DNA of 28,152 bases from Cyanophora paradoxa CCMP329 (GCA_004431415.1 QPMI01000598.1:1-28152), one strand, 5' to 3'. Counted from the first letter of the stretch, positions 3,249 through 27,000 are shown. Notes: generated by a model not told the origin, from the letters alone. A program made the numbers and translations.

Positions 3249-3573
3249 CTTGCTACGCGGTACGTACTCTATCGCCCAATCGAAAACCGATTGTACCCTC
3301 CCCGACTGGACAGTGCACGGGGCGGGCCGGGCGGGCCCGCGCCGGCGCCACGAAACTGGCCGGCGCCGAATTTCGAGGCGCGAAAGACCAGATCGATCAG
3401 AATGCACGTGCTTTAAAATTTGCCGCTGCATCTGCAGCGCTAGCTCTAGCGCTATGCTAGCTTCATCCTTCTCTCCCCCTCCTTCAAATTCCGAAGTTCC
3501 CCCCCCCCCGGCAAGCCGAAAAAAAGGAATCGGCAGCAGCAGTACTAGTGCAGCTCGTAGACGCGTTGCAGCC

Positions 3574-4547: not shown

Positions 4548-5808
4548 GCAACCTTATCGCTCTCTTATCGCCATCCTCCAATGCCCTCTTCCCGTTTCCT
4601 TTCCTCTCTTCCTCATCGTCGTTCCTCAGACTGTGTCCCGAACCAAATCTGCTCTTTCTAAGCTACGGGCGCGCGGACCACTCTGGTATTTTCGGGTACC
4701 AGTGGAATAGCGTAGGGGCCTGCGCATGCACAAAACGCTAGCCTAGTAGGTGTTTAATTTGGCACTGGTATTTCCACCATGGGATTGGGGCGGGGAAACA
4801 CAGCTTCTAGAAGCTCTAGCACGCCGTGACGAGCTCCTCAAAATCTCTCCCCCCCTCTTGTTGCATTAGGGCCGCCTAGTAGCTTTGATCGCATTTGACA
4901 CATACGAAAACGCAGGTCCGGCTACAAGTGTGGAATGTACACTGCGGCCGCCGCGCCGCGGGCCCAGCCCACCAGCAAGCTGGCCAGCCGGCCCTGCGTG
5001 GCCCTCTAAGGAGAGTAATGCGCCTCCCGCGGACACTCTAGCTGGCTAGAGCTACACGTGCCCGCACGGCGTGGTGCTGCATCGCGTCTTGCGGCGGCGG
5101 GGTCGTCTCGGGGCGGTGGCGGGAGCCCCTACAGGCCCTGGGGGGGAGTCAGCCTGCGGTGGGCGCGAAAAGGGTCAGATCGAAATCGAAAGGAATGCAG
5201 ATCCAAATCAAAGCAAACGGGGCGCACTCGATCGACGAGCCTCCCGCCAGAGGAGCGCCTGCGCGGGCGATCACCTGGGGCGGCAAGCCTAGTAGCTTTG
5301 ATCGTGATTGGAGTTGGGCCGGCCGCCGGGCGAGGTCGGACTTTGTTTTGAGTTCGTCTGTGGCCAAAGAGGTTTGACTTCGATTCCAATATCAGAGTCT
5401 GGCCCTTCGAATTCGAATTCGCGCCCCGGTGCAGCCTGCAGCCTGGCAGGCAGACTCCATGTACATGTCGGATCCCCAAGCCCGTAAAAAAAAGGCTCCC
5501 ACCAACACCCAAGACATGTTCATGACCGCGGCTGGTACCATGGGCCACCGCCTCGAGACACTGTGACATGTGGACGTTGCATAAATTGTCCACCAATATA
5601 AATTAGTTCAGCGTCTGCAGGTGATCATACGATCCGGCACTCGCCGCCAGTGCCCGGGGTGAGGCACATTACCCCCTCATAGGGAAATGCAGGCACGCGT
5701 TGCAGAGGGTAATGCGGCGGGCTGGGAGCTGAGAGCTAAGAGCCGATATCGTTTTAGTGCGTGTCAAATGCGTACTGGTTGGAAACTACAGAAGTCAGAA
5801 TTAGATCT

Positions 5809-5981
5809 AGAGTTGCGGTTACGATCGGAATCAGAGCTGCGATTACGATCGGAATCAGAGCTGCGATTACGATCGGAATCAGAGCTGTGATTACGATCGG
5901 AATCAGAGCTGCGATTACGATCGGAATCAGAGCTGCGATTACGATCGGAATCAGAGCTGCGATTACGATCGGAATCAGAGC
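5809..5981. repeat. 24-bp tandem repeat, 7 copies (AGAGCTGCGATTACGATCGGAATC)
   Basis: Directly visible; contains the near-palindrome GATTACGATCGGAATC; no spacers. Confidence 0.97.
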
Positions 5982-6014: not shown

Positions 6015-6319
6015 GTTATTTTCCGTCTAGGCGGGCTCGCCCTCCAGCGCCGCCCGATCGCAATCGTAATCGTACTAATCGCACAGACCTCTCGCAGGAG
6101 CATCTTCATCCGCTACGGCACCGCGTGACGCGAAGCGCCTGCTCACTGGAGTCAGCTCGTAGCTAGGCTCGGCTCCGATTCCTTTTTTCCATCAGGGCAC
6201 CAGTCCCTGCGGATTACGCTCTATCCCTAACAGCACGGTACAGTTAAAGCGTTGACGGTCTAGGAGTGTCCCGCGCGCCCGTAGCTTAGAAAGAGCAAAT
6301 GCAGTGTACATTCCACACT

Positions 6320-9300
6320 CTATCCTAGAAAGAGCATACCTGTACCCTGGCGACTAGTATCACAGGACATTGCCTTCATCTCAGAGATTTTCTCCAAGAT
6401 TTCGTCACGCTTCCAGCTCTTGAGGTTTGTGCATGTTCCATTGTGAACAAGTGCGCCTATTTGATCCATGCTGTACTCCTGCTCCAATTTCAGCAAAGTC
6501 GAGGAGAGATACAGGGGAAATTTGGCGAACCATGTGCTGGCTGACCCAGTCCACAAACTCGCTTTCAGGTATAGAGAAGCCAACTATATAGTTTTGGACG
6601 TAATCCACTGCAGGAATTGGCCTGAAAACATGGTGAGGGTTGCGGAAACGAAAACACTGAAGGACATGCTCACCTGACAGTGCATCTTGATTCCAGTGCT
6701 GCAACGAGAACCAGCAGATCCTGCTTCATCTGGTCGTAGCCATCCTTGGGCACTGCGTACAGTCATTCAGCACGGCTGCAGAATGAGGTTGCAGGATGAC
6801 GCAGGATGACCCACCTTGGACACCGAGAGTATGAGTCCACAATTGTCTGCATGCCATGTGTAATCGATGCCTCCCAAAGCCCGTCCTAGCCTGAAGAGGC
6901 ACGCCAGCTTGAAGAGGCCGCCATTGGAGTCTAATCCAGACCTAGTCTGAAGAGGCATGCCGTTCGAGTCCAGTGATGATACCTTATCCATATACTGTGC
7001 CAGCTCTTTCACAAGCACATCTGAAAGAAGGCAGTCAAAGCTGCAGCTCGAATGTGCGAATGTGTGCCAACGAGTCTGCACTTGCAGGCAACAAAGCATT
7101 GCAGCTTGCGGCGCAAAAAAGGATACTGACGTAGGGTTGAATGGAGGCCGGTCTTCTTTGTCAGGTAGGCTATCCACCGAATATCGAGAATAGTTGCTTC
7201 ACGCTATCGAGCTGTTGCGGAAGGCGAGGTCAAGAGCCGTGAGCCTGCGGTGCACAAGGCGAAAAACGAACAGGTAGAAATTGGTGCAGATGTTCAGGTA
7301 CATATGTTGCGGAGCTCTGGAACAAGGTCAACAGATCTTGCAAAGAACTGCTTTGCAGTCTCTGTCTCGTCTTTGGGCAAGAGCTTTTGTATCCTCGGCT
7401 TGAGGAGATTGAGCACATTGCAAACGAACATCAGCGATTCGGTGGACACAGTCCTGAGAACAATGCCGAACATTGATGCCTCGGAATTCAATCGTTCCTG
7501 TCGGAAATGTTTTCAATCTCTTATACAGGATATCTGAAACAAAGTCGGGACACTCTCCCACCTGGACAGCAAAATTGACTGCAATTCCACCAGCAGCGCC
7601 AACCTCAATGCCCGGTGCAAGGGCTGAGGACGAGCCAGGCTTGTTGATGAACTGGTCGCGCAGATGCACAAGGAGATTCCGCAGGCGAGGTGTAATTGCT
7701 GTGATATGGTGAGATTGCGCAGAAGGTCGATTCGCACATGAAATGGATGAACTCGCACCAGAGAATACAAACCAGTCCTGCATATCATTTGTGTGGGTTG
7801 GGCTGAGCGCAAAAAGGCTGAAAACAGTGTAAATAAAGAGATCCACAAGATAGGTCATGCCCTGAGCTCGAATTAGATAAAACGATTTCTTGCAGAAATT
7901 CAATGCACTGACATGAAAAGCATCCAGCGCAATTGGAGACAGGATCTCCATCATGCTGACATATCGTCCAACTGTCCTTATCACCCTGAGGGACGTAGGG
8001 ACAACAACAGGCCCTGCCAATGTGTCGAATCCATCTACAATTACGTGAGCATGAAGTGATTGAGGGTACAGAGGAATTTGGTTGCAAAGGTCGTACCGGG
8101 AGTTCTGCCAACAGGCGTCACGCCATCCTCCTGCTTCTCGCACAACTCCTCGTCTTGGGGAACATCAACAAGCTCCTCCTGCGAATTCATGAATGCACGC
8201 TCTGCTCAAATAATTGCAGAGAGTGCACCTCATCTATGTCGTCACCAGCCTCATCTCCACCAACACTGGCACGTTCCCTTTGCGCCTTGGCACTTCTAAA
8301 CGGGTTGGCGCCAGTCTGCAGAAATGTTCGACCAGATTCCGAAACGATGGCCTTTGCCAAAGCTCGGGATGAAGATGCCCGCAGTTCCTAGATTGCAAAT
8401 TTAGTCTGGCAAAGCTGGCAGCAAGGATTCGTTGACCTTAATTTGGGAAACGTTGAATCCAATCGGCACAGGTGACCGCTGCCATGTCTCGTTCATAACC
8501 ATGGTCCGAATAGCCTGAGATGGATCAGTCTACAAACGATTGCCCGAGGGGAGAAAAAAGTGCCTCGATTGTCTCGTGGTGGTAGTGCTCGAAGTAACTC
8601 TTGCTCTGCTCTTTGATGCACCTTCTTAATACATTGGAGTCGCTCCACTGAACTCTTCACCAGCCCTGATAAACTGCGGAAAAAAGTTACGGGCAGGGAA
8701 GACAGAAGTGCGGGGTGCTCACGTTGTTTGTTGTGTCCATAAGAGTGAGAAACTGCTCCACTTTAAGGTGTGTAAACTGAACTGTGGACAAAAACTGAGC
8801 GATTCTCCTCTGCATTGCTTCCCACATGGTTGCCGACACCTGCTGACGAGTTTCGAATCCGTAGAGCTGATAGTAAAGCGAACTACCGACCTGTCGAGTG
8901 CGACTTCGATGTCTGGAAGCTGGGCTCCTCGAGATGCTGTCGGCGCCCCAGCTGGTCGTTTTGTGGCTCCACTTTCCCTACAGTTGCACATGAGATCGAG
9001 AGATCATTTCTACTGCAAAGAGATGTCGCACAGGGACTTGGCTCGGAGCCATGAAAGCATTGCATGGTGAGAGTGCATCAAGTCCACGAAGGCAGTGAAC
9101 ATTGTCCTCAGGCATTCCTGCACTCGGTCCTCCTCAAGGCGCGTCAAGAGATCCTTATATTTGGTCCTGCGTAAGGGAGAGGTCTCGGCCATAAATCAAA
9201 TGGCGAGGCAAGAAGCAGACTCACTTTGTCTCGGAGCCTTCTGGGGGATGGCCTTGGTGGTGGAAGATGATGCAGACCAGCAAAGGATGAGCGAGAAGCA

Positions 9301-10564
9301 AAGGATGGGTAGGTGGGTGAGGTTGGCGAAGAAGGGTTGGGACAAAGGAAGAGAGAGCCTGGGTGGCTGCCAGCTTTACAGCGTCCTCGAAGAATTCCGG
9401 AATCTGCAAAAATGTGAGAAAAAAAAGACATGATTCATGCCACAAGCAATACCGCCAACCTTGAAGACAACATACTGCATCATTCGCATCGACTCGTATG
9501 CCGCCAAAACCCGCTGGTACGCGGCAGAATCGAATGCCCTGCACAATCGCGACAGTGCCTGCTCGACATGGACCTGGATCTCCTTCATGGTGTCCTGCAT
9601 GGCATCTGCAAGAAGCCGCATGGGTGCCAGGTGCTTGAAGCGCTGAGCCTCTTTTTCGCAATCCTTGCAGTGGCGATAGGCTTCAGCGTAGTCGCCGCTT
9701 GCAAGAGCAGCCCGCATCGCCTCATGCATCTGCACAGCCCCTTCCATCTGCTTTAGCACCGCAGTGATGCCCTGAACTCGAGGTCAGCACAATGGGTGTG
9801 GTTTCACGGCAAACTCAAAACGAAGCAGAGACGCACGGATAACATGTTTCGCTTCTGGAACTTGGTAAGCACAGAGAGCCCCCCGCAACAAGCTCACGCT
9901 CCGATGTAGCTAGAACTTTGCGACTCGTCCTGCACAGTTCGACCGTGCTCGCAAGTCTTCCTCCAGGTGGATATCATGTCCAGCTGCTCCACTGACACAG
10001 CAGCAGTTAGTGAGGCAAGGACACTGCGGACTTCATGCGCACTGAAATCATCATGCTTGGTAAACACCGAGTCTGCAAGCTTTGCCGAGACAGCGCGCAG
10101 TGAGCGCTGCTTGGCACGAAGCTCCGTCTCCATCATCGCCTCATCCGCAAGAGCAGGGAGGCGCTCCAGCACAGCGCGTACTCCGTCGTAGTGTGGCTGA
10201 TAGTACGCCTCGTGCAAACTCTGCATGGCCTCGACGTCTTCCAAAGGGTCGTCCGTCGACCGGAGCGGCATCTGCGGGATCGAATCAAAAGTCGCATAGT
10301 GTGCTGCGTTCGAGGAAGTCTGTGCACCAGGACAGGAACGATCGGCTCGTTCGCCGTCGTCGCGTAGTTGAAGAACAAAGGCTGCGCGGGTATCGCGAAG
10401 CGCTGATACTCCGACGCATGCGCTCCTGCCTCGCCTTCTTCGCCCGCAGGGCCAGGCTGCGCAGCGGCTGCCGCCGCCGCCGCGCCAGCAGGCCCCGCGT
10501 TCGGATCCTCCTCATCCGACGACGAGTCGATCATGCGACGCGCGGCATCGAACACGCCGCCCAT
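6320..10564 (-). CDS. VPS50: Syndetin / VPS50 (EARP complex subunit), multi-exon
   Basis: Colinear segments resembling VPS50: YYQPHYDGVRAVLERLP...AVSAKLADSVFTKH; ASGDYAEAYRHCKDC...MQDTMKEIQVHVEQALSRLCRAFDSAAYQRVLAAY; KYKDLLTRL...CLRTMFTAFVDLMHSHHAMLSW; C-terminal RPIPAVDYVQNYIVGFSIPESEFVDWV and EYSMDQIGALV. Confidence 0.9.
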
Positions 10565-11800: not shown

Positions 11801-11852
11801 CTAGTTCCTCGCCCTAGATTACATTTTAGATTGCAAAATTCGACTACTTCTA

Positions 11853-12070
11853 CTCTTTCTAAGCTACGGGCGCGCGGGACCACTCCTAGACCGTCAACGC
11901 TTTAACTGTACCCGTGCTGTTAGGGATAGAGCGTAACCCGCAGGGACTGGTGCCCTGATGGAAAAAAGGAATCGGAGCCGAGCCTAGCTACGAGCTGACT
12001 CCAGTGAGCAGGCGCTTCGCGTGGCCGCCTTGGCCGCCAGCGGCCGAGCAGCCGCCGAGTCTGCCGAGCC
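11853..12070 (+). mobile_element. Solo or truncated end of the TIR element family fused to a fragment of a GC-rich repeat
   Basis: 11853-12022 is near-identical to 23600-23774 and to the reverse complement of about 6130-6295; 12022-12070 matches about 24448-24495. Preceded by TA. Confidence 0.9.
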
Positions 12071-12774
12071 GTGCACTCATAATTATAAGATGTCAGTAAG
12101 AGGAGTTTAAGTACAGCCCGCTGCAGCTCCAAAAGAAGCTATGCATCAGCTAGTCTTGTGGCTAGCCCTGTGGGTTTCTCTGCAGCTGCAAACTTCAGAA
12201 GGAGCATCTACCCGTCCATGAGAGGACAATAATGCTCTGGAAGAGCATCAGAGGACAAGTGCGAAGTAAATTTGCCAGGGGGTCAGGGCACACACACCCT
12301 CGAGAAAATGAGCCAGACAAATCCAAACTTCCCGCATATCACTCCTCCGGGGCTTGATGATTATCCTCCAGTTGGACTCGACTGTGCTTTCGGTCGAGGA
12401 GAAGACACAAATCTAGAGAGAGTGTGAGGCTAAAAAAAATCGACACAAATCGGATCTTCAGACTCACAGGATGGCCATACACCTCACTGGCTGCAATCAG
12501 CGTATAATGATCTCCCCACATGACACGTTTCAAACTGAACGGAGTTTGCGTCACGCCCCGCCCATTGTTAACTTCTTCCGCCAATGAAATTAGCCCAGCG
12601 CAAACTTGAGCTCGAACTTGGCCTCGTACACAGTGGCGTACACACGCGGCCACAACGGTCACAGTAACGGTCAGCAGGCCGGCTTGCTAGTCAGCTTCCC
12701 TCGGCTAGGCCGGACTAGCTAGCTTCCCGCCATCGCGCACGCCCGAGCGCGAGCATTCCTGCACGCCGCCGTGC

Positions 12775-14692
12775 ATGAAGCAGTCAAAGCGAAAGGAACC
12801 CAGCCTCTGGGATGACGGCTTCGACGAGGCCGACGTCGGCACCGCTGGCACGGCAAGCGACCCGACAGCAGCAGCTCGTGGGCCGGCAAGGGCAACATGA
12901 AGCGTGTCAACAAGATCACTCAGCAGGCGCGCAAGGCGAAGGAGCCCAAGCTCCCTGACCTCGACATCCTCAAGGGCGAGCACCCCGCGGCAACGGTCCG
13001 CTGCCTGGACACCAGCGGCCGCGCCTACCACGTTCGCCTTGGCGACTTCGTCATCTGTTCAGTTAGCTCAGACACCCAGCTGTGTCCAGAACTCAGCGTC
13101 GTTCGCCGAAGCCCTTCCATTTCCCGCGCCCAGGTGAAACGATTTTGGCGCGAGTCGAGGGCGAGTTCCCAACACAGACGAAGGCGAAGCGCGGCGACTT
13201 CAACTACTCCGTCAACGGCGTCATCCTTCGGCGCTTCGTGCGCCCGGAGGACTCCGATGTGAAGGACTGCGGCTCGGCAGCGTGATCATCAAGGCAGACG
13301 GGGAGCAGGCAGCCGTGGCCATCGCAAACCACCTCATCTACTACTCGAACGTGACGGTCCGCCGCCGCGCCCGCGCCCCGTTCCAGCGTCCGATGCCCGT
13401 GCGCGCAGGTTCACGCACCCGCGAAGGTGGTGGCCGCGGACGAGTACAAAGCCCTCAACCACGCCGATCCCCACATCTACGTCTGTAAGCAAATCATGAC
13501 GTTCCGGGCGACGGCTCCTTCCAGTTCGACGTCGCCCTCGCCTTCAACGCGAGGCTCAAGCGAGTGGCGAAGAAGAAGATGGCGTGCTTCCTCCGGCCGC
13601 TGTCGAGGCCGGAGGAGCGCGTGAGGCGATTGGCTACCTTCAGGACGCCGCCGCGAACGCCCTCAAGCGCCGGAAGACCGGGACGCAGCTTGTCAACGTC
13701 AAGATCCCGGTGGCCGGGCCGGCAATGTTGGTCTGCGGCTCTTATGACTCGTTCGAAGTTCTTTTTCCTATCCTCTAACGGTGCGCATCGCAGGAGAACA
13801 TCGTGGCGCAGGTCGCGCACGTCGCCACGCCCATCGACCCGAAGACGGGCCAGCCGATCCCGGTTGACAAGCTGCCGGCGGCGAATCGCTTCGTTATCGA
13901 GCTTCCGGACCGCGAGACCGCTGCTGGTGGAAGCCGCTTCCTTTTTCCCGCTCGCTGTTCTTTTTCCGACCTCTTTGCAGCTGTTCTCGGTCCCTCCGGC
14001 GTGGCGCAAGCGTCCAAGCGCGTCTGCAAGCGGGACGCGGACGGGAAGGCGATCCGGAAGCACAGCGAGATGCAGACCGTCACCGTCGAGAAGGCGTACG
14101 GCGGCTTAATCGTGCCGCGCCACACGGGCTCCCATGACGTCGTCCAGTTCGACGAGCGTGCGCCCGGCCCGCCCTCGCCGCGCCGCTCGCTTACGAAGCT
14201 CTGCTCCTTGGGCGCGGCAGGTCCCGGTCGGATCGTGGCCACGAAGCGCTCGGGCAGGAAAGGTGGGCACGTCACGCTCGAGCTTCCGAGCTACGAGTAC
14301 GGCCCCGACGGCGAGCGCATCGCCAGCCTCGCGGGGCCCCTCGCGGCTGTCCCGTGAAGCGCCCGCGCCGGTGCCGCGCCGGCGCCAACACCGTCGCCAA
14401 GGCGCCGCCTGTCCCCGAAGCAGCCCCTTCAGAACCTGCCGCCGCCGCCCTGCCGGCCCCGCCGCCGCCGCCCTGCCGGCCCCGCCGTCGCCGCCCCGCC
14501 GGCCCCCGCCGCCGCCGCCCTGCCGGCCGCCGCCGCCGCCGCCCCGCCCGCCCGCCCCGCCGGTCGCCGCCCTGTCGGCCCCTGCTGCTGCTGCCCCACC
14601 GGCCGCTGCCGCCCTACCTGCCCCCGCCGCATCCGCCTCGGTCCCCAAGTGCGCCCCTCCCCTCGCCCCCGCTCGGCTACTTGCTCGCCTAA
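12775..14692 (+). CDS. BAH-domain protein with uncharacterised middle region and Pro-rich tail, spliced
   Basis: YHVRLGDFVICS|..ILARVEG..VILRRFVRPEDS..NHLIYYSN|..KVVAADEY..PHIYVCKQIM is the ordered BAH motif series. Start may be 12775 or 12897; stop 14357 or 14692 depending on indels. Confidence 0.75.
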
Positions 14693-14805
14693 TCCTGCAG
14701 CAGGAAGGATCGCGCGGCACAGCTCGCGGCCGCGGTGGCGGCGCGCAAGAGGGCAAAGTCGTGAAGCTGCTACTGAGAATCGCACTATCTAGGTTACAAG
14801 GTGCG

Positions 14806-17800
14806 CTATGTCTGGTCCAAATCCATTTCGTCTATTTCCCCCTCCGCTAGATCGTCTGCTAGAACCTCTGCTAGGGCCCTATCATCGAAATCGAGCATGT
14901 TGGCGCCCTCATCCTCCGCCTCCATCTCCTCCTCCGCCTCCTCCTCTGCCTCGGCGTCGTACTCGGCGGTCTCCTCCTCCTCCTCCTCCTCGTCCCGCTC
15001 TCCTCGGGCACCTCGTCCTCCGGCACCGGATCCCCCTCCTGCAGCTCAATATCCTCGTCGATCTCCTCCTCGTCCGCAGGCAGGGGCACCGCTGCCACCT
15101 CCTCGCCCCCGGCGGCGCCGCCGCCGCCCTTCGCCCTGCATAGCCGCTGACCGGTGGGACGGGCCGCAGGTCGGGGATGAAGGGCCCATCTGGCCAGGCC
15201 TTGGCGGCGACGGGCGCGTCGTACTCGGCGTGGGCAGCGTCCTTCCGCCGGCGCTCGCCTCCGTCATGTTCCGCATCCACAGCGCCAGGCGCCGCCGCTG
15301 GTGCGTCATGATCTGCTTGAGCATGTCGAGGTCCTTGTTCCACCCGCCACCGAGAGACGTGACGGTGTGTCGCAGGCGCCGAAGGAGGCCCATGTAGGAC
15401 TCGATGACCTCGCAGCTCCAACGGCCGGGCGCGTTCGTGTTGTCGACGCGCGCCCAGAACGCGAGGTGCGCAAGCGTCGAGTGCATGTAGCGTGTGAAGA
15501 TCTTCCATAACGGGAAGTGTGTCTCCATCAGGCCCTGGAGCTCGGCGACGGCCTCGATAACTTGCTGCCGCGCCTCCTCGTCGGGCTTCATGTTCCGCTC
15601 GTACTGGTAGATGATCTGGCGGAGCTGCCAAATCTCGTGCATGCCCTCGTCTTCTCGCTCCAGCTCTCCTTACTGTCGCCGAAGCAGATGCTGAAGAGGG
15701 TGTCGGGCGCCTCGGGTCCTCCAGGATCTTCTTGGCGGTGTTGGCGGAGATCTTCTGGAAGAACTTGTAGGTGGCCCCGTTCTCGGTCTTCTCGAACTTG
15801 ATGTTCCGCGCGTATTTATCGCGAAGATGACGCTGCAGGTCTTCGATGCGCTTCTGCTGGTCCTCGGAGGCACCACAGGCGAGGGCGAGGAAGAAGTAGA
15901 CGAAGAACCCGGCCACCCAGCTCTTGATGCCGTGCAGGGCGTCGTCGAGCCGGACCTGAGGTGCGCGTTGGCGTCCGCTGAGGCGAGGTGTCGCGGGCTT
16001 CTCACCTCGACGGCAGCGACGGGCAGCATGCTGTTCGGAGCGGCTGCAGGAGGGCGTTGGCGTCGTGCTCGGGGTGCGGATTCTCTGTTCGCTGGCTGGA
16101 GGGAGGCCGTCCCGATCCCGCGGCCCTGCTGCGCGCACGACTTCGACCGCCGAGCACTCGGACCTGCAGTAACGTGAGCCCCATGCCGAATCTCAGCGCG
16201 TGTGACTCGGCGAACTGACCCGCGTCGGTGGACAGAATCGCAGTGCGGGCACAGGTCGAAGCCGAGGAGGACGCGGAGGAACTTGTAGTCGCCCGTCACC
16301 AAGAATTCGACCTCGACGGGCTTGTCGTGCTCGTACCCGGGATCAGGGTGAGCGGGTTCTCGTTCAGGTACTCGACCATGTCGGCGAGGGCTTGATGCGT
16401 GGGCGCAGGTTCTCCTCGCTGTCGCTACCGCCGAAGAGCATTAGGGGCAGGAGGGCGTAGCAGCTCTGAACGCCCTTCAGCGGGTGGTACGCCTGCGTCC
16501 CGTCCTCCTCGATGACGTAGTAGCCGTCGACGATTGCCACGATGCAGGTCATGCCGTCGGTCGTGGAGACGCTCTTCCGCGGAACGCGATCGTCCCGTCG
16601 CCCGCCAGGCGGACTCGAGGTCTGATCTTCTTCCCCCTGTGCTTGTGCAGCGGGACGAAAGCGCTGATGAGGGCCGACAGGGCGGGCGTCGGCGTGACAG
16701 CTCTGCGGGGCGGCGGCGCTGCCGCCTCTCCGCCCGCCGCCGGCGCTGCGCCTCTCCGCCCGCCGCCGGCGCTGCGCTCGACGGAGGCACAAAGAGCTCG
16801 AGCATGACGCCCGGCTTGCCCTTGTTCTCCTCGTCGCCGACGCCCGCCGCTGTTTCGACGATCTGCACGATCTGCACCGCTCGTGAGCCTCGTCCCTCAC
16901 CCCGCCCGCGCGCGCGCGCCGCGCCTTCTCGAGGTCATCGTTGACCTTGCCCGTAGCTTCGTGATGCAGTGCTTCGACGGGAGGAAGGCTCGCAGCCCCA
17001 CGAAGTGCTTCTTCAGGGCCTTCTTGAGGAGCTTCGTGAACTCAAAGTACGTCGCCTGCCCGGTCGGTTTAGAACGGGATGGGGGTTAAAACATTCGAGA
17101 AAGGGCGCACGTCCGAGATGCAGTGGCGGTCCTTCCACTCTAGAATCTCGCAGTCGGGAAGGTGTCCCGCAGCTTCCTGCAGGCGATGCTCATCGCCTTC
17201 TTCACTTGCAGCTGACCCGATTTGCTCGTTTCCAGGGCTCGTTGGGCCTGCGGACGGTGGTTCAGAAAGGTGCTCTTCTCCAACGATTTTGTAGCCTATT
17301 AAAGTACGATTCTCGGTAGCTCTTTTTATGTATAATAACGCGCACTGCGTGTGGCCCGATGATGCTCACGAGGCGGCGTGCCTCCGCCTCCAGCGCCTCC
17401 CTCCTCTTCTGATAGGCGCCCTCCTCCTCTCCTTTGTTCCTGGGCGCCCTGGATAAGCATGCATATGCCTGCGCGCGCGCCGCCCCGCCTTGTACCTCGC
17501 GAAGTTCTTTTTAAACATGGGAGGCGGATCTGGATGTCCGGACTCGCAGCGTTTAGAATCGTCGAGAGCAGCATGCGGAGGAACCGCGTGCGCCGCTGCC
17601 TGGACGTATCCGAGCATCCCTTCCCAGGACCTGCCTAGCTATGCGCGAGATGGTCGCTGCACGCTGTGCCGAAGTCCGCGGGACCTTGGCGCGCTTCGAC
17701 TGGTGCTCCTCCCTAAGCTTCTTGTTCTCCGCCTCAAGCACTGCGATGCGCTCGTCGCGCGCTTTGAGCGTCGCCTTGCGGACGATCCGCTCCTCAGGCG

Positions 17801-17880
17801 GCACATCTTCCTTGCCGCGAGCGCGTTTCGGGGCGGTGCCGGGCCGGGGGCCGGCCGCGGCGCCGGGCTCGGCGCCTCAT
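14806..17880 (-). CDS. RAG1/Transib-family DDE transposase/recombinase, spliced, with acidic C-terminal tail
   Basis: In order: WKDRHCISD|ATYFEF..LPSKHCITKLR; VRLAGDG (D at about 16597); QSCYALLPLMLFGGSDSEENL; FLVTGDYKFLRVLLGFDLCPHC (D at about 16288); DDALH (about 15935); TRYMHSTLAH...GRWSCEVIESYMGLLRRLR (E at about 15400); stop TAG at 14806-14808. Core 15300-17260 is well supported; the 5' extent to 17880 is uncertain. Confidence 0.85.
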
Positions 17881-17941
17881 TAAGAACTGCATTCGTCTGC
17901 TCGCGGCCGGGCAGAGAGCATACACTCGTAAGCGCGGCAAG

Positions 17942-18280
17942 TCAAGTCATGACATCGAATTTGAATGAGCGGCATACCACGTCGGCGCCGAACGCGCGAC
18001 GACCGCGCTGCTGCTGCTGCTCTGGGCTAATCTGAGGCGATTGCGGGCTCGCTGGAGCCGATGGCGACCCGGGTGGCGAAGCTGGAGGGCTCTGCAGGAT
18101 GCACTGGAGGAACACAGCCACTGCGGTGGCCTCTTGAAGCGCCGCCGTGCAAGCTAAGCTATGCGGATACAATGGAGACGCAATGCCGCGCGCCTCCAGT
18201 TCCAGGGTGGCGTTTCGGCTGTGGGTGAGCACTGCGATGATCCGCATAAGCGCCTGGTACGCGACCGACGCGTCCGCCAT
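17942..18280 (-). CDS. Small hypothetical protein (MADASVAYQALMRII...SP-rich)
   Basis: Open frame with a real ATG and protein-like composition directly upstream of the transposase on the same strand; no recognisable domain. Confidence 0.35.
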   Translation of the reverse strand: MADASVAYQALMRIIAVLTHSRNATLELEARGIASPLYPHSLACTAALQEATAVAVFLQCILQSPPASPPGSPSAPASPQSPQISPEQQQQRGRRAFGADVVCRSFKFDVMT

Positions 18281-18712
18281 CTCTAAAACGACTGCTGCGG
18301 GCGCTGGAAACGTTTGGGCGCGGGCTGGGCCGCGGGACGGGGCGCGATGGGTCGCTGCATCGCGCGGCGGGTTCAAAACTCGGAAAAAAGATCGCGTGTA
18401 CCTCCCCTGCCATCTGCGGAAGCGGCAGCTCCGAGCGCCGCGAGCAAGCATACACATCCGCGACAGTTAGGCGCCGAAGAGCAGCAGGCGAGCCAGCATG
18501 CGCGATAATGCGCAATTGCGATGCATAGCTACCTTAGGCGAAGCGGCTGGTCCACCCGCGCGGTCCTTGCCGGCCGCGATGCTCGCTCGTCGATATGGTA
18601 TGACGCGCTAAGCAAGGGAGCATGCCCAGACTGGGTACGCAAACTGCTGAACGTCCAACTCCAGCTGAACGCCCTGCAGCTGGTGGGCCTGAAGCAGCCT
18701 CAAGCGTTAGCT

Positions 18713-19486
18713 ATGTCGCATCGACAGTGTAGCTATGTTAGCTGTGGAGCGAAGCATATGCCCGCTGACTACGTGTCCGAGGAGGAGGACCAGGAGGAGA
18801 CCATCAACGCGCCGTGCAATCGCCCAATGACTTCGTCTGTCATCGAGATCAACAGCAGCGACTCGGAGAGCGATGGACCAGCGGCAGCGCGCCGAGCGCA
18901 GGGCGCGCATGAAGGCGGACGAGGAGCGCGCGCTCGAGGAGGAGGATGAGATCAGGCGGCGCCACCAGGCAGCTTTGGAGGTCAACCTCGCAATAGAGCG
19001 CGACTCGGTGAGGCCATACAAGCTGGCCGAGCTCAAGCAGTTGCTGGAGTACGCGCGCGCGTGGATGCGCGAGCACGAGCAGCTGTACGAGCAGTTCGAG
19101 GTCGCGCTGGCGCACAACAACCTCCTCGAGGCCATTAACCTGCGTCGGAGATCCGCAAGCACCGCAGCACGGCGCGCTTCTGCGGCAGGACCCCTCGGCT
19201 CTACGAGGAGGCGGCCTTCAAGCCTCTCTATGACAACGTGACGGCCTTGCAGCGGCGGGCGGGGCAGATGGAGCATTTCGGCGACAATCTCTTCAAGTGC
19301 GCGGAGCACTTCCAGCGGGTGCGCATCCGGCAGCAGCAGGCGGCGGCGGCGGCGGCGGCGGAGGCGGCGGAGGCGGCGGCGGAGGCGGACGGGGCTGCTG
19401 CTGCTGCTCGGTGCAAGCGCCGCCGCCTGCGTCGCGGCGACGGCGTGCTCGTCTCGCGGCCGGACGATGCCGACGACGAAGCGTAG
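18713..19486 (+). CDS. Hypothetical helical/coiled-coil protein with SIM-like motif
   Basis: Overlapping frames join into ...VIEINSSDSESD...ERALEEEDEIRRRHQAALEVNL...QQQAAAAAAAEAAE...KRRRLRR...DDEA*; probable intron near 19141-19188. Confidence 0.55.
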
Positions 19487-19496
19487 CGCCGTTAGC

Positions 19497-19747
19497 CGCC
19501 CCGCCCGCCGTTAGCCGCCCCGCCCGCCGGCCCCGCCCCGCCCGCCGGCCCCGCCCCGCCCCGCCGGCCCCGCCCCGCCCGCCCGCCCGCCCCCGCCCGC
19601 CCGCCCCGCCCGCCCCCGCCCGCCCCGCCCGCCCGCCCCGCCCCGCCCGCCCGCCGCCCCGCCCCCGCCCGCCCCGCCCCGCCCGCCCCGCCCCGCCGCC
19701 GGCCCCCGCCCCGCCGGCCCCGCCCCGCCCCGCCGGTCGCCGCCCTG
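19497..19747. repeat. Low-complexity (CCGC/CCCCG)n tract, G-quadruplex-prone on the minus strand
   Basis: About 250 nt almost entirely C/G, with runs of 2-5 C. Confidence 0.9.
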
Positions 19748-20933
19748 CCGGCGACGGCGTCCTCGTCTCGCGGCCGGACGATGTCTGCAGCTAGAGTCAC
19801 CAGCTGCAGTCTGCACCTGGCTTGAATACGACAGATTTACTAGTTATTCTGCTATCGTGCGCGCACCGTGCACCGTGGCACCGTGGCACTCAGTGACTAC
19901 CGAGAGTGGCGGGCGGGCTGGCGGGGCGGGCTGACAGGGCGGGGCGCCTGGCGGGACAGTCGGGGCCTCCGGACACTCTGGCAGTCCGGGGCCTCGGAGC
20001 CTATTTTCGCGCCATACAAGGCCTCCCCGACCCTGCAGCTGCATAGGAGGCCTTATATAGTGCTTTAAAAAGGTTCTCTAAGCTTTTTCGATGTCTCCCA
20101 GCTCCTGGGCGATGGGCCCAATTTGGAAGGGCCAAAAGTCAGCAGAAGACTAGCTGTAACGTAGTGTATAGGCGTATGATGAGTCATATGGTATGACGGG
20201 TTAAATGGGCCCATCGCGGGGCTTTGTGCAGGGCACTAAATAACGCCGTGTGACGCCTCTACATCTTGAATAAAAAGTTCTAATCAAGATACGAGGCTGC
20301 CGTGCTTCAATCGCAAGCCTCGGAGTGCAGATTCCCTGCAGATCAAAAATTGCGAACGCGATACCGGGGTCGCCGCGCGCTCGCAGCCTTGCGAAACCTT
20401 GAGAGCGGATAAGATTGCCGCCGACAGCGAGCCCAGCTCCCGCTCGCAGTGCAGCCGCGCGCTTAAGGCGCCGGCCAGCCACTTGGCCCGGCTGCAGCTG
20501 CTCCGGCACGGGCGGCCTCAGCCAGCCGGCACCATGCTATCGCAGCTTCAGCCATGAGCCTCGGAGAGGGCGGAAGTCTCCGAGGCTCGGTCCGCGATCC
20601 AGGGCAGGCGTGCGTATGTTCCAAGTTCGCGGCGAGGGCGTGCGCCTCGCCGAATCGTTGTCGCGGCGTGCGCCTCGCCAGGTGTACTACAGTGCCACAG
20701 TGCCACGTTGTCGAAAGCGCGAGCCGCTCAGTCAGCCGAGTTTCCTCCGCTGCCAACCGGGTACGCATACGCCCGGCCCGGCCCGGCATGCCACGAGAGC
20801 GCCCGCGGCGCTTCACGCGGTCTTCCTTCATCTCCGTGACCCGCTTCTGCGAGACGAGGTCGGTGGGGCAGCGGCTGCTTGCCGCAGTGCATGGATTGCC
20901 AGCCCCAGGTGCGAGGCCTTGACTCATCCCGAG

Positions 20934-21085
20934 CTTCCCGAGCAGATTACCAGGCGCGCCGGCGTAGCTCAGCGCCGATTGGGTCTGGCACGGTCCGCCT
21001 TTGCGGCCGACCCCGGTTCCGTGCCCAAGCCGTTCCGACCTTCCCGAGCAGATTACCAGGCGCGCCGGGCGCACCTAGCTCAGCG
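20934..21085. repeat. Direct repeat pair CTTCCCGAGCAGATTACCAGGCGCGCCGG...TAGCTCAGCG
   Basis: 29-bp exact copies starting at 20934 and 21040. Confidence 0.85.
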
Positions 21086-21231
21086 TCGCCGAGCTTATAG
21101 GCTAGGCTTGCTCGGAGGCTCCGGATGCACGCACAGTTAGCCAACCCAGCCGCGCCCCGCGTCCCCGCCCGGCTGTCGTGTGGCGACGCATGCGCAAAAG
21201 GAACACAAATTTTTCTCATCCGATGAGAGCT

Positions 21232-22927
21232 CTAGCTATGCAGGACGAAGCGAGCGGCCGGGGCTAGCGCCCGATGGCGGCGCCTCGAAAGGCGACGTCT
21301 CCGCGGCACAGCAGCGTGTAGCTGCTGGACCGCGGCGACCCACCCTGCGACCCTAGGCCCCCGGGGTTCCCGCATGAGCACGTCCCTCATGTAGAGATAC
21401 TCGATAACGGCCTCCAGCTCCTCCACCTCCTTTATGTACATGCGCTCCTCCTTCCGCCACACCTTCGCCTCACGCTCCAACTCCAAGTCCCAATTCCTCT
21501 TCATCCTTGAGACCTGCGCCGCGCCGCGTTACGCGCCAGCGGCGCACGCACGCGTGTGGGCAATCGCGGACCTTGTTTCCAAGTCATCCACCTTCGTCTG
21601 CAGCGCAGCGTTCTGGTTCTGCAGCTCCTCGCACTCCTCTTCGAGGTTTTTGACCCGAGTCGCTCTCTGCGGCGCCGGAGGGACCGCCGTCAGCAGCGCA
21701 TTGCGGCGCCGGCGGCGCGGGCGGCGCGGCGGCCGGCGGCTCACCAGACTGGCGTTGAGCTGCATCATCTCCTTCTCCAGCTGAGCGATCTTCTCCTCCC
21801 GTTGAGCGATCTGCCGCTGCTTCTCCCTGTTGGCCCACCGCAGATCAGGGAGCTCCCGCTCCAGGGAGCTGCACTTCTGTTGGAGCTCCTCACGCTGCGC
21901 CGGTGCACGGAGGAACACGTCGACTTTCGCCTTCAGTTGATTGGCGAGCTCCGCGCCAGTTAGACCCTTGTCTAGGACATCCTGCGGCCCGAATCAGCGA
22001 GGCAAGCTGCGGGCGAAGCGCACGGCGGCGTGAAACGGCGCGCGCACACGCTGCTGAAGGTACTCGATCGCTTCAAGGAGCTTGGACGCCATGCGAACCG
22101 CATCGGAAACCCGCTTGCAGCCGGTGAGCCTCCGATAGAGTGCGGCGTCCTCCTCCTCGATGCGAAAGCGGTGCCGCCCGGGCTTGTCCCAGGGGGTGAA
22201 TCGATCTTCCTCCTCGCCCGTCATCTCGACATCGCACTTGCGCCGCTTGCACTGCTGCTTGGTGGACGTGGCGGCTTCTTCGGGCTGGCTTCTTCGCGGC
22301 TGAGCTGGCAGGCGACGGCGCGACAGAGGGATCGTCCATATACCGCTCCATGGCAACGAAGGGATCCTCATATTGCTCGCTCGGTGCCGCCGCGGGCGAA
22401 GGCTGGGAGGTCGCCGCCGCTGCCCGCTTGCGACTCACGCGCTAGGCATGTCCACGGGGTCGCTGGCGAGGCCGCTGCCGCCGGCGGCTGCGTGCGTGGA
22501 GGCGTGGCGGCTGATCATGCGAAGGCTGCGATTGCGAGGGCGCAGCTACTACCCGCTTGCGACGCGGCGATCAGGCGTGTACACGGGGTCGCTGATGAGG
22601 CAGCTGCGACAGGCGGCGTACACGGCTGTACAGGCGTACCCCCCCCAAAGGCGTCCCTGGCGTCTCACAGCAGCCGCTGCCGGGGCTCTGCTCGAGCTCT
22701 GAGCGTACTGGCGAGACTTGTGGGAGTCGCTCCCGCCCGCCGGCTCCGCCGCGGAGGCGCCAGCGCGACCGCGGCCGTCGCATGCGCAGCTGGCGCTGCA
22801 TGCGCAGGCTGAACGACTTGCTCGCTCAAAGCTGCGTCGCCAAAGTCGTCTGGATTCACGTCCTCGCCGAGGTCGTCCTGGCTGCCGCAGGTGCTGCCGC
22901 CAATCTGGCCGTGCCGCGGCCTGCCAT
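21232..22927 (-). CDS. Spliced hypothetical coiled-coil protein
   Basis: Exon-like frames RFRIEEEDAALYRRL..KLLEAIEYLQQ; EELQQKCSSLEREL..EEKIAQLEKEMMQLN; VKNLEEECEELQNQNAALQTKVDDLE; YIKEVEELEAVIEYLY, separated by short GC-rich introns. Ends approximate. Confidence 0.6.
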
Positions 22928-23235
22928 CGCTGGCGCCGCCCAGCCACGCTCTAATGGAACCGAACGCTGAGCCGACCTGGCAGACAGCACAGAGAGCGGC
23001 ATCTCGATCGCCGAACGCTAAGCTATAAGCGCTTTTGCTTTTCCCGCGCAAGTCCGTGGCTGGCCGCAATCTAGCTGCAGCTGGCCGTGGCTTGGAAGGG
23101 GGGGAGATGGCTTGGGGGGATATAGAATTTGGTCTAGCCAGCTCGAACTCGAACTCAGCCGGCTGATAGCCGCCGTGACACGGCCGTGTTCAAAATTCAA
23201 ATTCCATCCATTGTTAAAGCTCGCGAACTAGCGGG

Positions 23236-23599
23236 ATGTCCAAAAGGTCGCGCCGTTTTCGGCCCGTCGAGGTCCGTCCGGGGCCGTCTGCGACATGCGA
23301 AACAGCTCCTTACGACAACCGGCTTGCGGTCAGGATCCGCCATTTGGTTACAGTAATCGCCCCACGACTCGAATCCAAGGAGGTCCTTTCGTTTGAGCCT
23401 TCAAACTGTGCAAGAAGACCGTCGGACCATCGGTATGTCGGAGCCTCGGAGCACGCGAGAGGCTGGAGAAGCGAGCAGCTGACTTCGGCCTGGCAATCGT
23501 TGATGGCACTGATTGCTCTGGAAACTGCCAGTTTGACAGTGTGCGTCTGTATTAGGGTTAGGGCTCTCAGAGTCTTTTGATATCAACCAGAAGGACCTA
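23236..23599 (+). pseudogene. 5' fragment of an OTU-like cysteine protease gene truncated at the TIR-element end
   Basis: ATG at 23236, intron donor gtccgt, then ARERLEKRAADFGLAIVDGTDCSGNCQFDSV, resembling the OTU RL..GL...DGNCQF motif; donor gtgcgt at 23541; no His-loop half is seen after 23600. Confidence 0.55.
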
Positions 23600-24047
23600 C
23601 TCTTTCTAAGCTACGGGCGCGCGGACCACTCCTAGACCGTCAACGCTTTAACTGTACCCGTGCTGTTAGGGATAGAGCGTAACCCGCAGGGACTGGTGCC
23701 CTGATGGAAAAAAGGAATCGGAGCCGAGCCTAGCTATAGCTACGAGCTGACTCCAGTGAGCAGGCGCTTCGCGTCCACGCCGGTGCCGTAGCGGATGAAG
23801 ATGCTCCTGCGAGAGGTCCGTAATTCTTGTCTAGCTGCAAGATGCGAGGGGGAACTTAGCTAGCTGCATGATGCTTGGAGCTGATCGTAATCGTAATTCT
23901 TGTCTAGCTGATGCTTGGAGCTGATCGTAGTCGTAATTCTTGTCGAGGGCGCGGGGGTGCCCCCGGGCCTCTTAGCTCTCAGCTCCCAGCCCGCCGCAAC
24001 CGGTACCGTGATTACGATCGTACTTCGGATCGTAATAGTAATCGTTT
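23600..24047 (+). mobile_element. Truncated sister copy of the 4652-6295 element (one end plus subterminal repeats)
   Basis: 23600-23818 matches the reverse complement of 6086-6295; 23969-23998 is the exact reverse complement of 5713-5742; a 40-bp tandem unit containing GATCGTAATC lies in between; preceded by TA. Confidence 0.9.
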
Positions 24048-24087: not shown

Positions 24088-27000
24088 ATGCTTTTAGACG
24101 CACTCCGAAACGATGCATTCTTTCCTGTTGGCTTGCCCCTGAACGACGCCGAGAGCTGCTGAAGTTGAGTCCGAATCCAGACCTGGACCCCGTCAAGTCT
24201 AGAGTGCGGCCCGATCCGAGCTACGAGATTTGTCGAGATGATCGGCGCTAGTTGCGTACGACTCACTTGTTCGTATCCCGCAAGCTCCGGCTGTTACTCC
24301 GAGCGAGCGGCGCCTTAACGAAGCCCTCGGGTGCCCGCGTTGTCATCGCCCGATTGACCGAGCGATCTAAAAGAGCCTTTGCCGCTAAGCCGCCTTAACC
24401 GCTAAGCCGCGCAGCGTCTTGGCTGCCTTGGCCGGCTTGGCCGGCTTGGCCGCCTTGGCCGCCAGCGGCCGAGCAGCCGCCGAGTCTGCCGAGCCTCAGC
24501 AGCCGAGCCTGCGAGCAGCCGAGCCTGCCGAGCGCAGCCGAGCCTGCCGAGCAGCTGAGGCTGCTGAGCAGCTGAGGCTGGAGGGGGGTACAGAACGACT
24601 GGCTTCCTGTGAGGCCAGGGCGCAGTGAGATGCACTGGCGCGGTGCAGTTTTCGGGTGAACGACGAGAGAGCTCGCTGCGATGGGTCCGTAGCGTTCGAA
24701 GTCCTGCAACGCCCCTCGTGACCGCACTTAAGCGCTTAATTCGCAGGCGACGATGAGGCGAGAGCTGCCGATGTGCAGGAGATCGCCGACGGCTTTGCCT
24801 TGGCCGTGTGCGGTATCCTTGCTGCGGAGAGCGTCCAGGCGAGCCACGGAGACAGCGCCGCGACGGAGTAGCAGAGATCGTCGAGCGTGGGTATGATGGA
24901 TTGATGCACACTCGCTCTGTACGTGCTGACATTCACGCGGCGGACAGGCTCGAGGCGGCCAGCCGGCTCTTCTCAGGTGCGCTTGCTTCCTCTGCATGCA
25001 ATCCGCGCATTGCACATTCGTAGCTAATATGATCTGCAGTGCTGACCGGCAGGGCCTTCGACCACGCGTTCGCGCTGGTGTCCGCTGTGCACGGCCTGGT
25101 CGAAGCGGAGAAGGTGTCCCTCAGCCGGAAGCAGTTTCAGTACCTCACATCGATCATATCTTCGTTGTCGACTGTGCCGGACAACGAAGCGCGCCTGTTC
25201 AAACTGCTATGCTGGCGCATTTGCTCGGCCGGCGCGGCCAAGACGAAAGGTGCGGCCCGCACGAGCACAATACATCTTTCGCTGAGACGCCGTGAAGGTG
25301 CAAATTACAGCGGCATCTCCGAGGCGGTCGAGAAGGCGCTACGGAGCACACAAAATGCAGAGCTGAGGAGGAACATAGCGGATATCAAGAAGGAGCTCAG
25401 CGGTGCTCCGGCGCAGGGCAAGAAGTGCCAAGCGTTGTTCGACCTGCAGCACATGCGCGCGCAAGCTGCGAAGGCGGTTGGAAACTGGAGCTTCTCACAG
25501 GGGGCCTACCAGAAGGCGCGTGCTGCGGCGTCGCGCCTGCGGATCTCGCTGACACGGAGCAGGCAATCGTGTGCTACGATTTCGCAATCCAACAGTCTCC
25601 GGAAGACAAAGAATCGACTCTGCCATCTTCTGGTCGAACCGCGCGCAGTGCCACTGGAAGCTGGAGCGCTACCAGCAGGTCATCCTGGATTGCACGGAAG
25701 CGATCGCCCGCGCGCCCTTTGCCAAGGCCTACGTGAGCGCTTCCGCATGCGATCGCGGGGCGCGCGAGCTGATGCGCACCCCCGAACGAAGGCACGGCGT
25801 TCCAAGGCCCACGAGCAGCTGGGCGACCTCCTCGCTGCCTTGCGAGGTGCGCGGGGCGCCGGGCTACTCTGTCGCTCCGCGCCCGAGCGCCGCGCAGACG
25901 CACAGCAGTACATGAGGCTGGTCCCCGAGGACCGGGACGAGGCCGGGCGCGTTGCGGCCCTGCAGGCCACGGTCACGAAGCTGGGGCTCAGGCCCCCGTC
26001 GCCCTCCCCGGAGCCCGCCGCCCCGCCTCCGCCATCGGCCCCGCCCGACGAGGAGAAGAAGAAAGGGGCGGCGAACGGCCCCGCAGAGAAGAAGGGGCAA
26101 CAGCCGAAGGCGAAGGAGGAGGCGGCGACGGCCTCCTCCAAACGAGCGAAAAGGAAAGAGACGGGGACGAAGCAAAACGGGGCGGCCCCGCGGCGCCGCC
26201 CCGCCCCCGCCCCGCCCCGCCAGGTGCCGCGCCGCCCCATCCGCACCTCGCCGCCGCCGGGCCCAACGCGCCGCAGCGCCCGAAGAGAAGGGGGTGCTGG
26301 TGAAGTGCGAGACGCCGGAGGGCCCGATGGAGATCCGGGTCCCGGAGGCCTCTCATTCTCGGAGTTCAGACGGACCCTCATCACGTACCTGCAGGAGAAA
26401 GGCGTGTCGGGCCGCCAGCTGCGCTTCCTCCAGCTCCCGGAGAGGGGCCCCTGCAGAACGAGGAGCAGCTGAAGCAGTTCCTCTCCCGCCGCGTCCCTCG
26501 CTCGCCGTCGGTCCGGCCCGCCCCTGCGCCACGCGCCCCCGCCGCTTCGATCCGTGCGCCTGCAGACACCTCTTCTGCATCGGTCGCCTCGTCTGCGCCG
26601 CCCGCGCGAGAGAAGAAGCATGAGGAGGCACCGAAACCAGCGCCGCCGGCCCGGCTCCGCAGGCGAAGCTGCGCGCCGCGGCCAGCGGAAGCCCGAGAGG
26701 GCGCGGGGCGTCGGTAAACGGCAGGTCCCGCGGAGGCGACGAGGCGCCTAGCGAGGCCCCGCGGGTCGCCTCCGCTGCCGCCGCCTCCGCCGCTGCCCCG
26801 CCCGCGTCAGAGGCTGGTGCGCGCCGCGCGCAGCGCCCCGCGCCGCGCCGCCGGGCCGGTCCGAGGACGGCCGCCGCAGGCCGCTTCGAGCCGCTGCTGG
26901 AGCGCTAGAGGAGGCACGGGGCGGACGGGAGCCCCGAAGTCGAGCTGGCGGTCCTGGCCCGCTCCTCCGGTCGCGCCTGCCCAAGGCGCAGGGCGGCCGC

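Follow-up and report, generated by a model that had tools for sequence, protein, structure and literature searches.

A RAG1/Transib-type transposase gene and its convergent partner in a multi-copy element of the alga Cyanophora paradoxa

Outside animals, RAG1-type enzymes are few and comprise AanRAGL, scattered fragments and Transibs. In this work we analyzed 28,152 nucleotides from the glaucophyte Cyanophora paradoxa CCMP329 (GCA_004431415.1 QPMI01000598.1:1-28152, hereafter the window, from whose first letter all positions are counted), in which a minus-strand RAG1/Transib-type transposase gene and a plus-strand partner gene converge inside a multi-copy element. The closest described systems are the RAGL transposons (ProtoRAG/BbeRAGL, family A and B, AanRAGL; PMC10629977, PMC9435367). 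Like the C. paradoxa enzyme, they feature a DDE core with a CxxC plus H-x4-H zinc site and RAG1-like catalytic spacing, and they provide its best structural match; the second gene of BbeRAGL is convergent as well, and AanRAGL of Aureococcus likewise resides in a unicellular alga. In contrast, the present element, with about 10.8 kb and four or more intron-rich genes, contains no RAG2L with kelch and PHD domains, no CAC heptamer ends, and a candidate target-site duplication of 3 bp instead of 5 bp. Moreover, its transposase ends in an acidic, Cys-free tail past the catalytic Glu, where RAGL proteins have a C-terminal tail of cysteine type. In its presumed mode of action, the element corresponds to a RAG1/Transib-type cut-and-paste transposon that has an accessory gene; it is not a RAGL transposon, because it lacks a RAG2L, ends resembling the heptamer of recombination signal sequences (RSS) and a 5-bp duplication. 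The original prediction for this DNA was a ProtoRAG-like transposon in which a BAH chromatin reader replaces RAG2. A transposon with a RAG1-type transposase and a fixed, convergent, non-RAG2 partner is indeed present, as it is multi-copy and both genes are linked on another contig (tig00000249), whereas the ProtoRAG membership had to be given up in view of the ends, the candidate 3-bp duplication and the number of genes.

Transibs (HzTransib, subgroup I, the Nozomi/Hayabusa group) also work with a RAG1-type enzyme without RAG2, and for subgroup I a long zinc-domain insert as found here has been described. Classical Transibs are single-gene elements of 3-4 kb that have CAC ends and duplicate 5 bp of the target (PMC1131882). 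The C. paradoxa element differs from them in both of the latter criteria, with CGT..ACG ends (7/12 symmetry) and the candidate 3-bp duplication; however, 3-bp and TA duplications as well as variable ends occur within Transib according to a 2026 preprint (10.64898/2026.08.26.747230). The wider CMCT clade (EnSpm/CACTA, Mirage, Chapaev, Plavaka, ESTA, Lanisha) carries C(2)C and H(3-4)H motifs in the interval from the second Asp to the Glu (PMC12730594), and so does the C. paradoxa transposase. The 2-5 bp duplications of this clade agree with the candidate 3 bp, and some of its families carry chromatin-related passenger genes (TET/JBP); its termini are mostly CA..TG, unlike the candidate CGT..ACG ends, of which the right one is without reads. 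In layout, the element resembles MuDR, where the transposase gene mudrA and the accessory gene mudrB are convergent and antisense RNA arises from failed termination (PMC3440606), and in its proposed regulation VANDAL, which encodes the anti-methylation protein VANC (PMC6719617). Both belong to the Mutator superfamily with transposases unrelated to this one, and the likeness is hence one of layout and proposed regulation. Convergence had been taken as a RAG signature; yet the AanRAGL genes are arranged in tandem (PMC9435367), MuDR is convergent and C. paradoxa genes often lie end to end, and gene orientation therefore says little on RAG ancestry.

To the window we aligned read contigs of one DNA run (X1) and of three RNA runs from three studies (X15, X17, X18). 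The window contains many single-base deletions located in C or G runs. As the DNA run and the three RNA runs restored the missing bases at identical places, the frameshifts of the window are assembly errors. In the transposase gene, 12 frame-restoring insertions (15004-16743), deduced from frame changes against database models, coincide with 12 gaps in the read contig there; once these and two model introns were applied, 613 codons were open with a G+C content at third codon positions of 0.87. The transposase gene is intact, EukProt models of C. paradoxa match it at 92-100%, and a sense intron near 17440-17495 (minus strand) in RNA demonstrates that a sense transcript exists. The start is uncertain, with EukProt models beginning at 18280 and an RNA piece reaching up to 17974; the stop lies at 14806, as predicted, after the acidic tail that follows the catalytic Glu. 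The features of the gene are as follows:

14806..18280, minus strand: DDE transposase gene of RAG1/Transib type, encoding a long acidic tail at the C-terminus (motifs, EukProt models, RNA, fold match)
16597-16599, minus strand: first catalytic Asp (AGDG motif), assigned by motif order
16288-16290, minus strand: second catalytic Asp (GDYK motif), 104 residues past the first
16240-16251, minus strand: CxxC zinc ligands
15466-15483, minus strand: H-x4-H zinc ligands, aligned to RAG1 YFHKTLAH
15400-15402, minus strand: catalytic Glu, 262 residues past the second Asp

The motif series follows the RAG1 order (D, D, CxxC, DALH, H-x4-H, E), with a short gap of 13 amino acids between the second Asp and CxxC. 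The distance of 262 residues from the second Asp to the Glu is outside the 206-214 of classical Transibs and nearer to the 253 of RAG1 (PMC1131882), and this longer form is present in subgroup I Transibs, too (PMC9435367). Taken alone, sequence matches to RAG1 were weak (Pfam E 0.05-0.11, PDB E 0.13), but the PDB match was residue-level around the histidines and the catalytic Glu; DUF1280 also matched weakly (E 0.19). An ESM Atlas feature search returned RAG1 clusters at 0.94, and RAG1 domains were the only named families. We then compared a single-sequence structure model (residues 1-345 of the transposase model, mean predicted local distance difference test score, pLDDT, of 48) with 48,161 chains by VIA-align. 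The top four were BbeRAGL (Z 9.6, root mean square deviation 4.2, 147 residues aligned) and three RAG1 chains (Z 8.7-8.8), and HzTransib matched less well (Z 6.6). These analyses thus show a RAG1/Transib DDE-plus-zinc architecture with RAG1-like spacing, and bear out the predicted enzyme type. A particular closeness to RAG1 is likely, since motifs, spacing, features and fold agree, yet the zinc motifs are common to the whole CMCT clade. PDB sequence searches with longer transposase models gave no match, an Atlas shape search reached a template modelling score of at most 0.36 by query, and Pfam showed nothing above noise to the EnSpm/CACTA, Mirage, Chapaev, Plavaka, ESTA or Lanisha families. 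Apart from one repeat artefact, no relative outside C. paradoxa was found among 1.84 billion representatives, nor did metagenome, viral and GTDB contigs or an encoding-contig search yield one. No RING or Cys-rich N-terminal domain was seen. Separately, we observed that 16927-18300 is covered by almost no X1 DNA contigs (depth near zero at 17922-18300) and is present in RNA runs and in models on other contigs, which points either to a gap left by filtering or to a real absence from the DNA samples; in 14 DNA-like runs, 0.77 of the words of 12775-17880 were present, about the share up to 16743.

Read depth and junctions identify the transposase and its partner as parts of an apparently mobile element. 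In X1, depth rose from 146 at 12350-12525 to 1945 at 12527-12667; the partner had a depth of 1758 and the transposase one of 1141, that is, roughly 13x (left edge), 12x and 8x the flank. An X1 flank contig matches through 12525 and then continues with 310 letters of sequence not in the element, hence the site is apparently empty in this sample. An X15 contig has a different flank ahead of 12525 and thus represents the junction of another copy. Transposase models lie on 8 contigs, and six of these models do not differ in the 75-amino-acid stretch that was compared; on tig00000249 a partner fragment has the next gene number after the transposase (g22158-g22160). The element is multi-copy, with about 8-13 near-identical copies and an apparent insertion polymorphism, and its family is apparently young and still mobile. 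Within C. paradoxa the partner thus is not single-copy, and it adjoins a further transposase copy; both results favor the predicted pairing. Depth steps after 12527-12667 (1945 to 1758) and at 14480-14551 (to 1141) suggest copies of the left end only and copies of the partner without the 3' part of the transposase; since the partner is covered more deeply than the transposase, it seems that in some copies the partner is retained and the enzyme is not.

12523..12525, no strand: left copy of a candidate 3-bp target-site duplication (ACA), deduced from the flank contig and a constrained search
12526..12537, plus strand: left end of the element (5'-CGT...), where X1 depth rises from 146 to 1945 at 12527 and X15 has a different flank
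17400..22548, no strand: breakpoints in another copy that has apparently lost 5.1 kb internally (17400 and 22548 are adjacent in an X17 contig; non-canonical as a splice)
23303..23314, minus strand: candidate right end (...ACG-3'), 7/12 bases symmetric with the left end
23315..23317, no strand: putative right copy of the 3-bp duplication (ACA)

The first element base is 12526 or 12527. For the right end, 14 sites were eligible in view of the empty allele, and 23314 scored best among them, against 0.2 expected by chance. The element therefore likely extends over 12526-23314 (10,789 window bases) with CGT..ACG ends and a 3-bp duplication, which gives a likely size of about 10.8-10.9 kb with at least four genes; from the deletion derivative joined at 22548 it follows that it reaches at least 22577. 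A clear terminal inverted repeat was not found, a heptamer scan revealed no RSS-like CAC-heptamer terminal inverted repeats, and none of the best-scoring ends that the empty allele permits has a 5-bp duplication. CAC at 12524 precedes the shared start at 12526-12527 and is absent from another copy. We hence rejected CAC-type ends (left 12524, right 23541-23543), which give no duplication and whose C is missing in that other copy; a CAC-based inverted match at 23529-23543 was no better than shuffles (231/300). Direct repeats of 170 bp (11850-12022 and 23597-23775), which the original prediction took to bracket the block, lie outside the element, because flank-level DNA (12350-12525) intervenes and a third copy is found at about 6083-6300. 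Also discarded was a 7-bp duplication with 17948-17954, given that the upstream transposase exon 17978-18280 is common to other copies and X1 depth is near zero at 17922-18300. Two exact 10-mers (12562/23208 and 12609/23140) occur once near each element end in the same orientation and are possible promoter or subterminal binding motifs.

The partner gene starts at ATG 12775 and is intact, spliced and expressed:

12775..14764, plus strand: partner gene of about 570 codons (RNA introns, read-supported insertions, open frame)
13025..13500, plus strand: BAH-like motif series, recognized by eye on the translation

Four introns (13357-13408, 13731-13793, 13927-13980, 14158-14220) were seen in all three RNA runs, and 8 read-supported single-base insertions keep the frame open from the ATG. 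The ends at 14357 or 14692 proposed before are artefacts of single-base assembly deletions, and the corrected frame passes both. A putative fifth intron (14649-14700) has GT-AG borders, and RNA depth is 0 at 14653-14665; with this intron removed, the frame probably stops at 14762-14764, which leaves 41 nt to the stop of the transposase. The protein would be made up of a basic N-terminus, a BAH-like region, a middle part, a Pro/Ala tract and a basic tail, where a C/G-rich tandem tract at 14438-14628 (24-nt unit) encodes the Pro/Ala linker. As had been noted before, no kelch or PHD family is evident in the partner; exon-by-exon searches, which are of limited sensitivity, detected none in any piece of it or of the other open reading frames in the element.

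At residues about 86-225, the partner contains the blocks VRLGDFV, ILARVE, RFVRPEDS, KVVAADEY and IYVCK, which, as read by eye, follow the order of a BAH consensus. By eye, the partner can thus be compared with caged BAH domains of the SHL/EBS type and the cage-less BAH2 of PBRM1. In SHL, Tyr41, Trp63 and Tyr65 form the aromatic cage (PMC6013494), whereas the partner has Ile124, Arg154 and Val156 at the expected positions, in a register set by eye against this consensus. The methyl-lysine cage is hence apparently missing and, if the partner is a BAH protein, it probably is not a methyl-lysine reader. It also differs from these BAH proteins in that no PHD, chromo or methyltransferase domain is attached. 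PBRM1 BAH2 is an atypical BAH without cage that prefers unmodified tails (PMC10425938). Among proteins of 106-336 amino acids, the databases contained only a 106-amino-acid fragment of the partner and no host parent gene, longer proteins being outside that range.

RNA contigs further revealed a spliced transcript across the transposase:

14779..17090, plus strand: spliced RNA antisense to the transposase (RNA joints)

It has 11 introns, from 14801-15169 to about 16883-16956, that are GT-AG on the plus strand, three of them only after allowing for one missing base. Apart from the first (369 nt), they are about 48-75 nt long. Their joints occurred in RNA runs of three studies and in none of the DNA, and they are the strongest RNA joints over the transposase, unlike its own introns. 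The first intron begins 36 nt past the partner stop at partner-like depth; read-through thus is the simplest source, and the antisense RNA probably is a non-coding read-through of the partner gene. A protein-coding antisense gene found no support, as the intron lengths break the frame, frames that begin with AUG have at most 48 codons and the RNA is out of frame with the partner. One antisense frame (15170-16742) is oddly open, with 1 stop in 340 codons and no start codon, and 34/5000 random intron sets do as well. Predicted sense introns overlap RNA-supported antisense introns on opposite strands at 15956-16016 and 16164-16235. In the GC-rich C. paradoxa genome, long antisense frames, end-to-end genes and overlapping 3' untranslated regions are documented (PMC6704402).

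From these data we assume, with a probability of about 0.6, that the window contains one copy of a young C. paradoxa family of cut-and-paste DNA transposons, and that the convergent gene is an accessory factor and not an equivalent of RAG2. Judged from its family, the transposase alone would excise the element by nick-and-hairpin chemistry, and insertion would occur with a short stagger, here 3 bp, upon recognition of the poorly symmetric CGT..ACG ends. The partner, quite probably, is nuclear and adopts a divergent BAH fold without the methyl-lysine cage; its targets would then be the surface of nucleosomes, unmodified tails or chromatin proteins of the host. CpG methylation in C. paradoxa amounts to 32% and is concentrated on repeats (PMC12344493), and VANC of VANDAL sets an example of a transposon-borne accessory protein that counters methylation (PMC6719617). 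In such a repeat-methylating host, there is perhaps a little less than an even chance that the partner keeps the element expressed or steers its insertion. The partner transcript presumably runs on through the transposase gene and is spliced there into the antisense RNA that we observed. More tentatively, this RNA might damp transposase output via interference or small RNAs; in MuDR, added antisense RNA left sense transcripts unsuppressed (PMC3440606).

Several points weigh against this reading. The depth ratios are a rough proxy for copy number with a baseline from one contig, the X1 contig begins at 12527, one base inside the proposed left end, and the right end is statistically weak and without read coverage. 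Contigs cannot directly show strand, level or a single transcript, and the antisense RNA may be incidental, given the common overlap of 3' untranslated regions. Pfam, PDB and Atlas searches with stop-free partner pieces of 28-148 amino acids returned no BAH, so that the predicted BAH identity was not confirmed and stays with the motif order seen by eye; these searches are weak evidence against a BAH, as assembly errors and an intron cut the domain into four pieces of ~30-55 residues. The structure model of the transposase is single-sequence and helical, and Z scores under about 13 can be generic. Its RNase H part was modelled poorly (pLDDT 37) and matched nothing in a fold search, Foldseek found nothing at E<0.001, and the best Atlas match (0.95) was an unnamed arthropod cluster, with 24 of the 30 matches being unnamed animal clusters. 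The latter would suit an enzyme from another CMCT branch (EnSpm, Chapaev, Plavaka, ESTA, Lanisha) that is not especially close to RAG1; in this clade, accessory genes are usual, as are duplications of 2-3 bp. We regard this as a possible, though rather unlikely, assignment. It agrees with the clade-wide occurrence of CxxC and H-x3-4-H, with the HHpred matches of ESTA enzymes to RAG1 (PMC12730594), with the 13-residue gap, the candidate 3-bp duplication and the DUF1280 match, and the PDB search offered no solved clade members other than RAG and Transib for comparison. However, the residue-level RAG1 match at the histidines and the Glu, the RAG1-like spacing in both intervals and RAG1 domains as the only named Atlas families argue otherwise, and 3-bp duplications exist within Transib as well.

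With regard to the partner, it is unlikely that it is captured cargo, i.e., a fragment of a host gene that has no role in transposition and whose convergence and antisense RNA merely reflect dense gene packing. At least two further open reading frames without assigned function inside the element, the frequent end-to-end genes with shared 3' untranslated regions in C. paradoxa and the lack of a confirmed partner domain would fit; but the partner frame is open over its full length, its introns are spliced correctly, all three RNA runs represent it well, and no host parent emerged in the size range searched. Still less probable is a partner that stands in for RAG2, i.e., a BAH protein that binds the transposase within a heteromeric transpososome, where it would link cutting or insertion to the state of the chromatin. 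RAG2 docks via its kelch propeller, which the partner lacks, and the cage aromatics are apparently absent as well; in addition, partner depth exceeds transposase depth and some copies seemingly have a partner without the enzyme. The tight, fixed convergent linkage with 41 nt between the stops, the expression of both genes and the BAH-like motif order speak for such a complex, as does the RAG1-length interval between second Asp and Glu, a region including the RAG2-binding helices; yet subgroup I Transibs retain these helices without any RAG2 (PMC9435367). We consider it similarly improbable that a glaucophyte transposon of the RAG1 clan independently recruited a BAH subunit in parallel to the PHD finger of RAG2 and limits itself via antisense read-through from the partner. 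It is highly improbable that the pair is a dead relic or has been domesticated as an immobile locus of the host, as the many window frameshifts and the lack of a clear terminal inverted repeat might imply; this is largely refuted by the nature of these frameshifts as assembly errors, by about 8-13 near-identical copies, and by the apparently empty site in X1 and the other flank in X15.

In the literature, mostly open-access and without Repbase, neither this element nor a BAH partner of a transposase of this kind turned up, in line with the original prediction, to which no description of such a pairing was known, and we found no paper that joins Cyanophora paradoxa, a transposon and RAG1. New in this work is the spliced plus-strand RNA with 11 introns antisense across the transposase; it also adds corrected gene ends, the error nature of the frameshifts, the co-occurrence of partner and transposase, candidate element ends and the apparently missing cage. 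An intact, expressed, apparently mobile RAG1-like element without RAG2 is thus at hand in a culturable haploid alga. It could be used to test which role the RAG2-binding helices had prior to RAG2, and in what way a RAG1 scaffold allows end recognition and the length of the duplication to change. If a bound BAH subunit proved true, the element would be a live natural test of a RAG1-type enzyme gaining a chromatin-reading partner.

The two-gene element of the original prediction must be extended by at least two open reading frames, and host genes are located on both sides:

18521..19486, plus strand: third gene, frameshifted in the assembly, helical with an Ala-rich tail; inside the element as judged from its ends
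21232..22438, minus strand: fourth gene, coiled-coil protein (Pfam: only generic coiled-coil matches below cut-off)
3572-4400, plus strand: host gene for V-ATPase subunit D (flank)
about 6300-10564, minus strand: host gene for a Vps54_N-domain protein (GARP/EARP) (flank)
25039-26600, plus strand: host gene for a tetratricopeptide repeat (TPR) protein (flank)

The third gene matched no Pfam family above cut-off and is followed, inside the element, by a C/G-rich tandem tract (19496-19749). An Rfam search found nothing. A 52-nt direct repeat (98%) flanks the element at 12019-12070 and 24444-24580, with the right copy expanded into short tandem units. At 5809-5981, a tandem array in which a 24-nt unit is repeated 7.2 times (97% matches) is followed by an 11-nt array; related words reappear near 23870-24020. 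The dispersed repeat of 170-220 bp, to which the rejected direct repeats belong, is a small family separate from the element; its copies are 94-98% identical and intergenic, at 11850-12022, 23597-23821, 6083-6300 (inverted) and 4647-4683 (partial).

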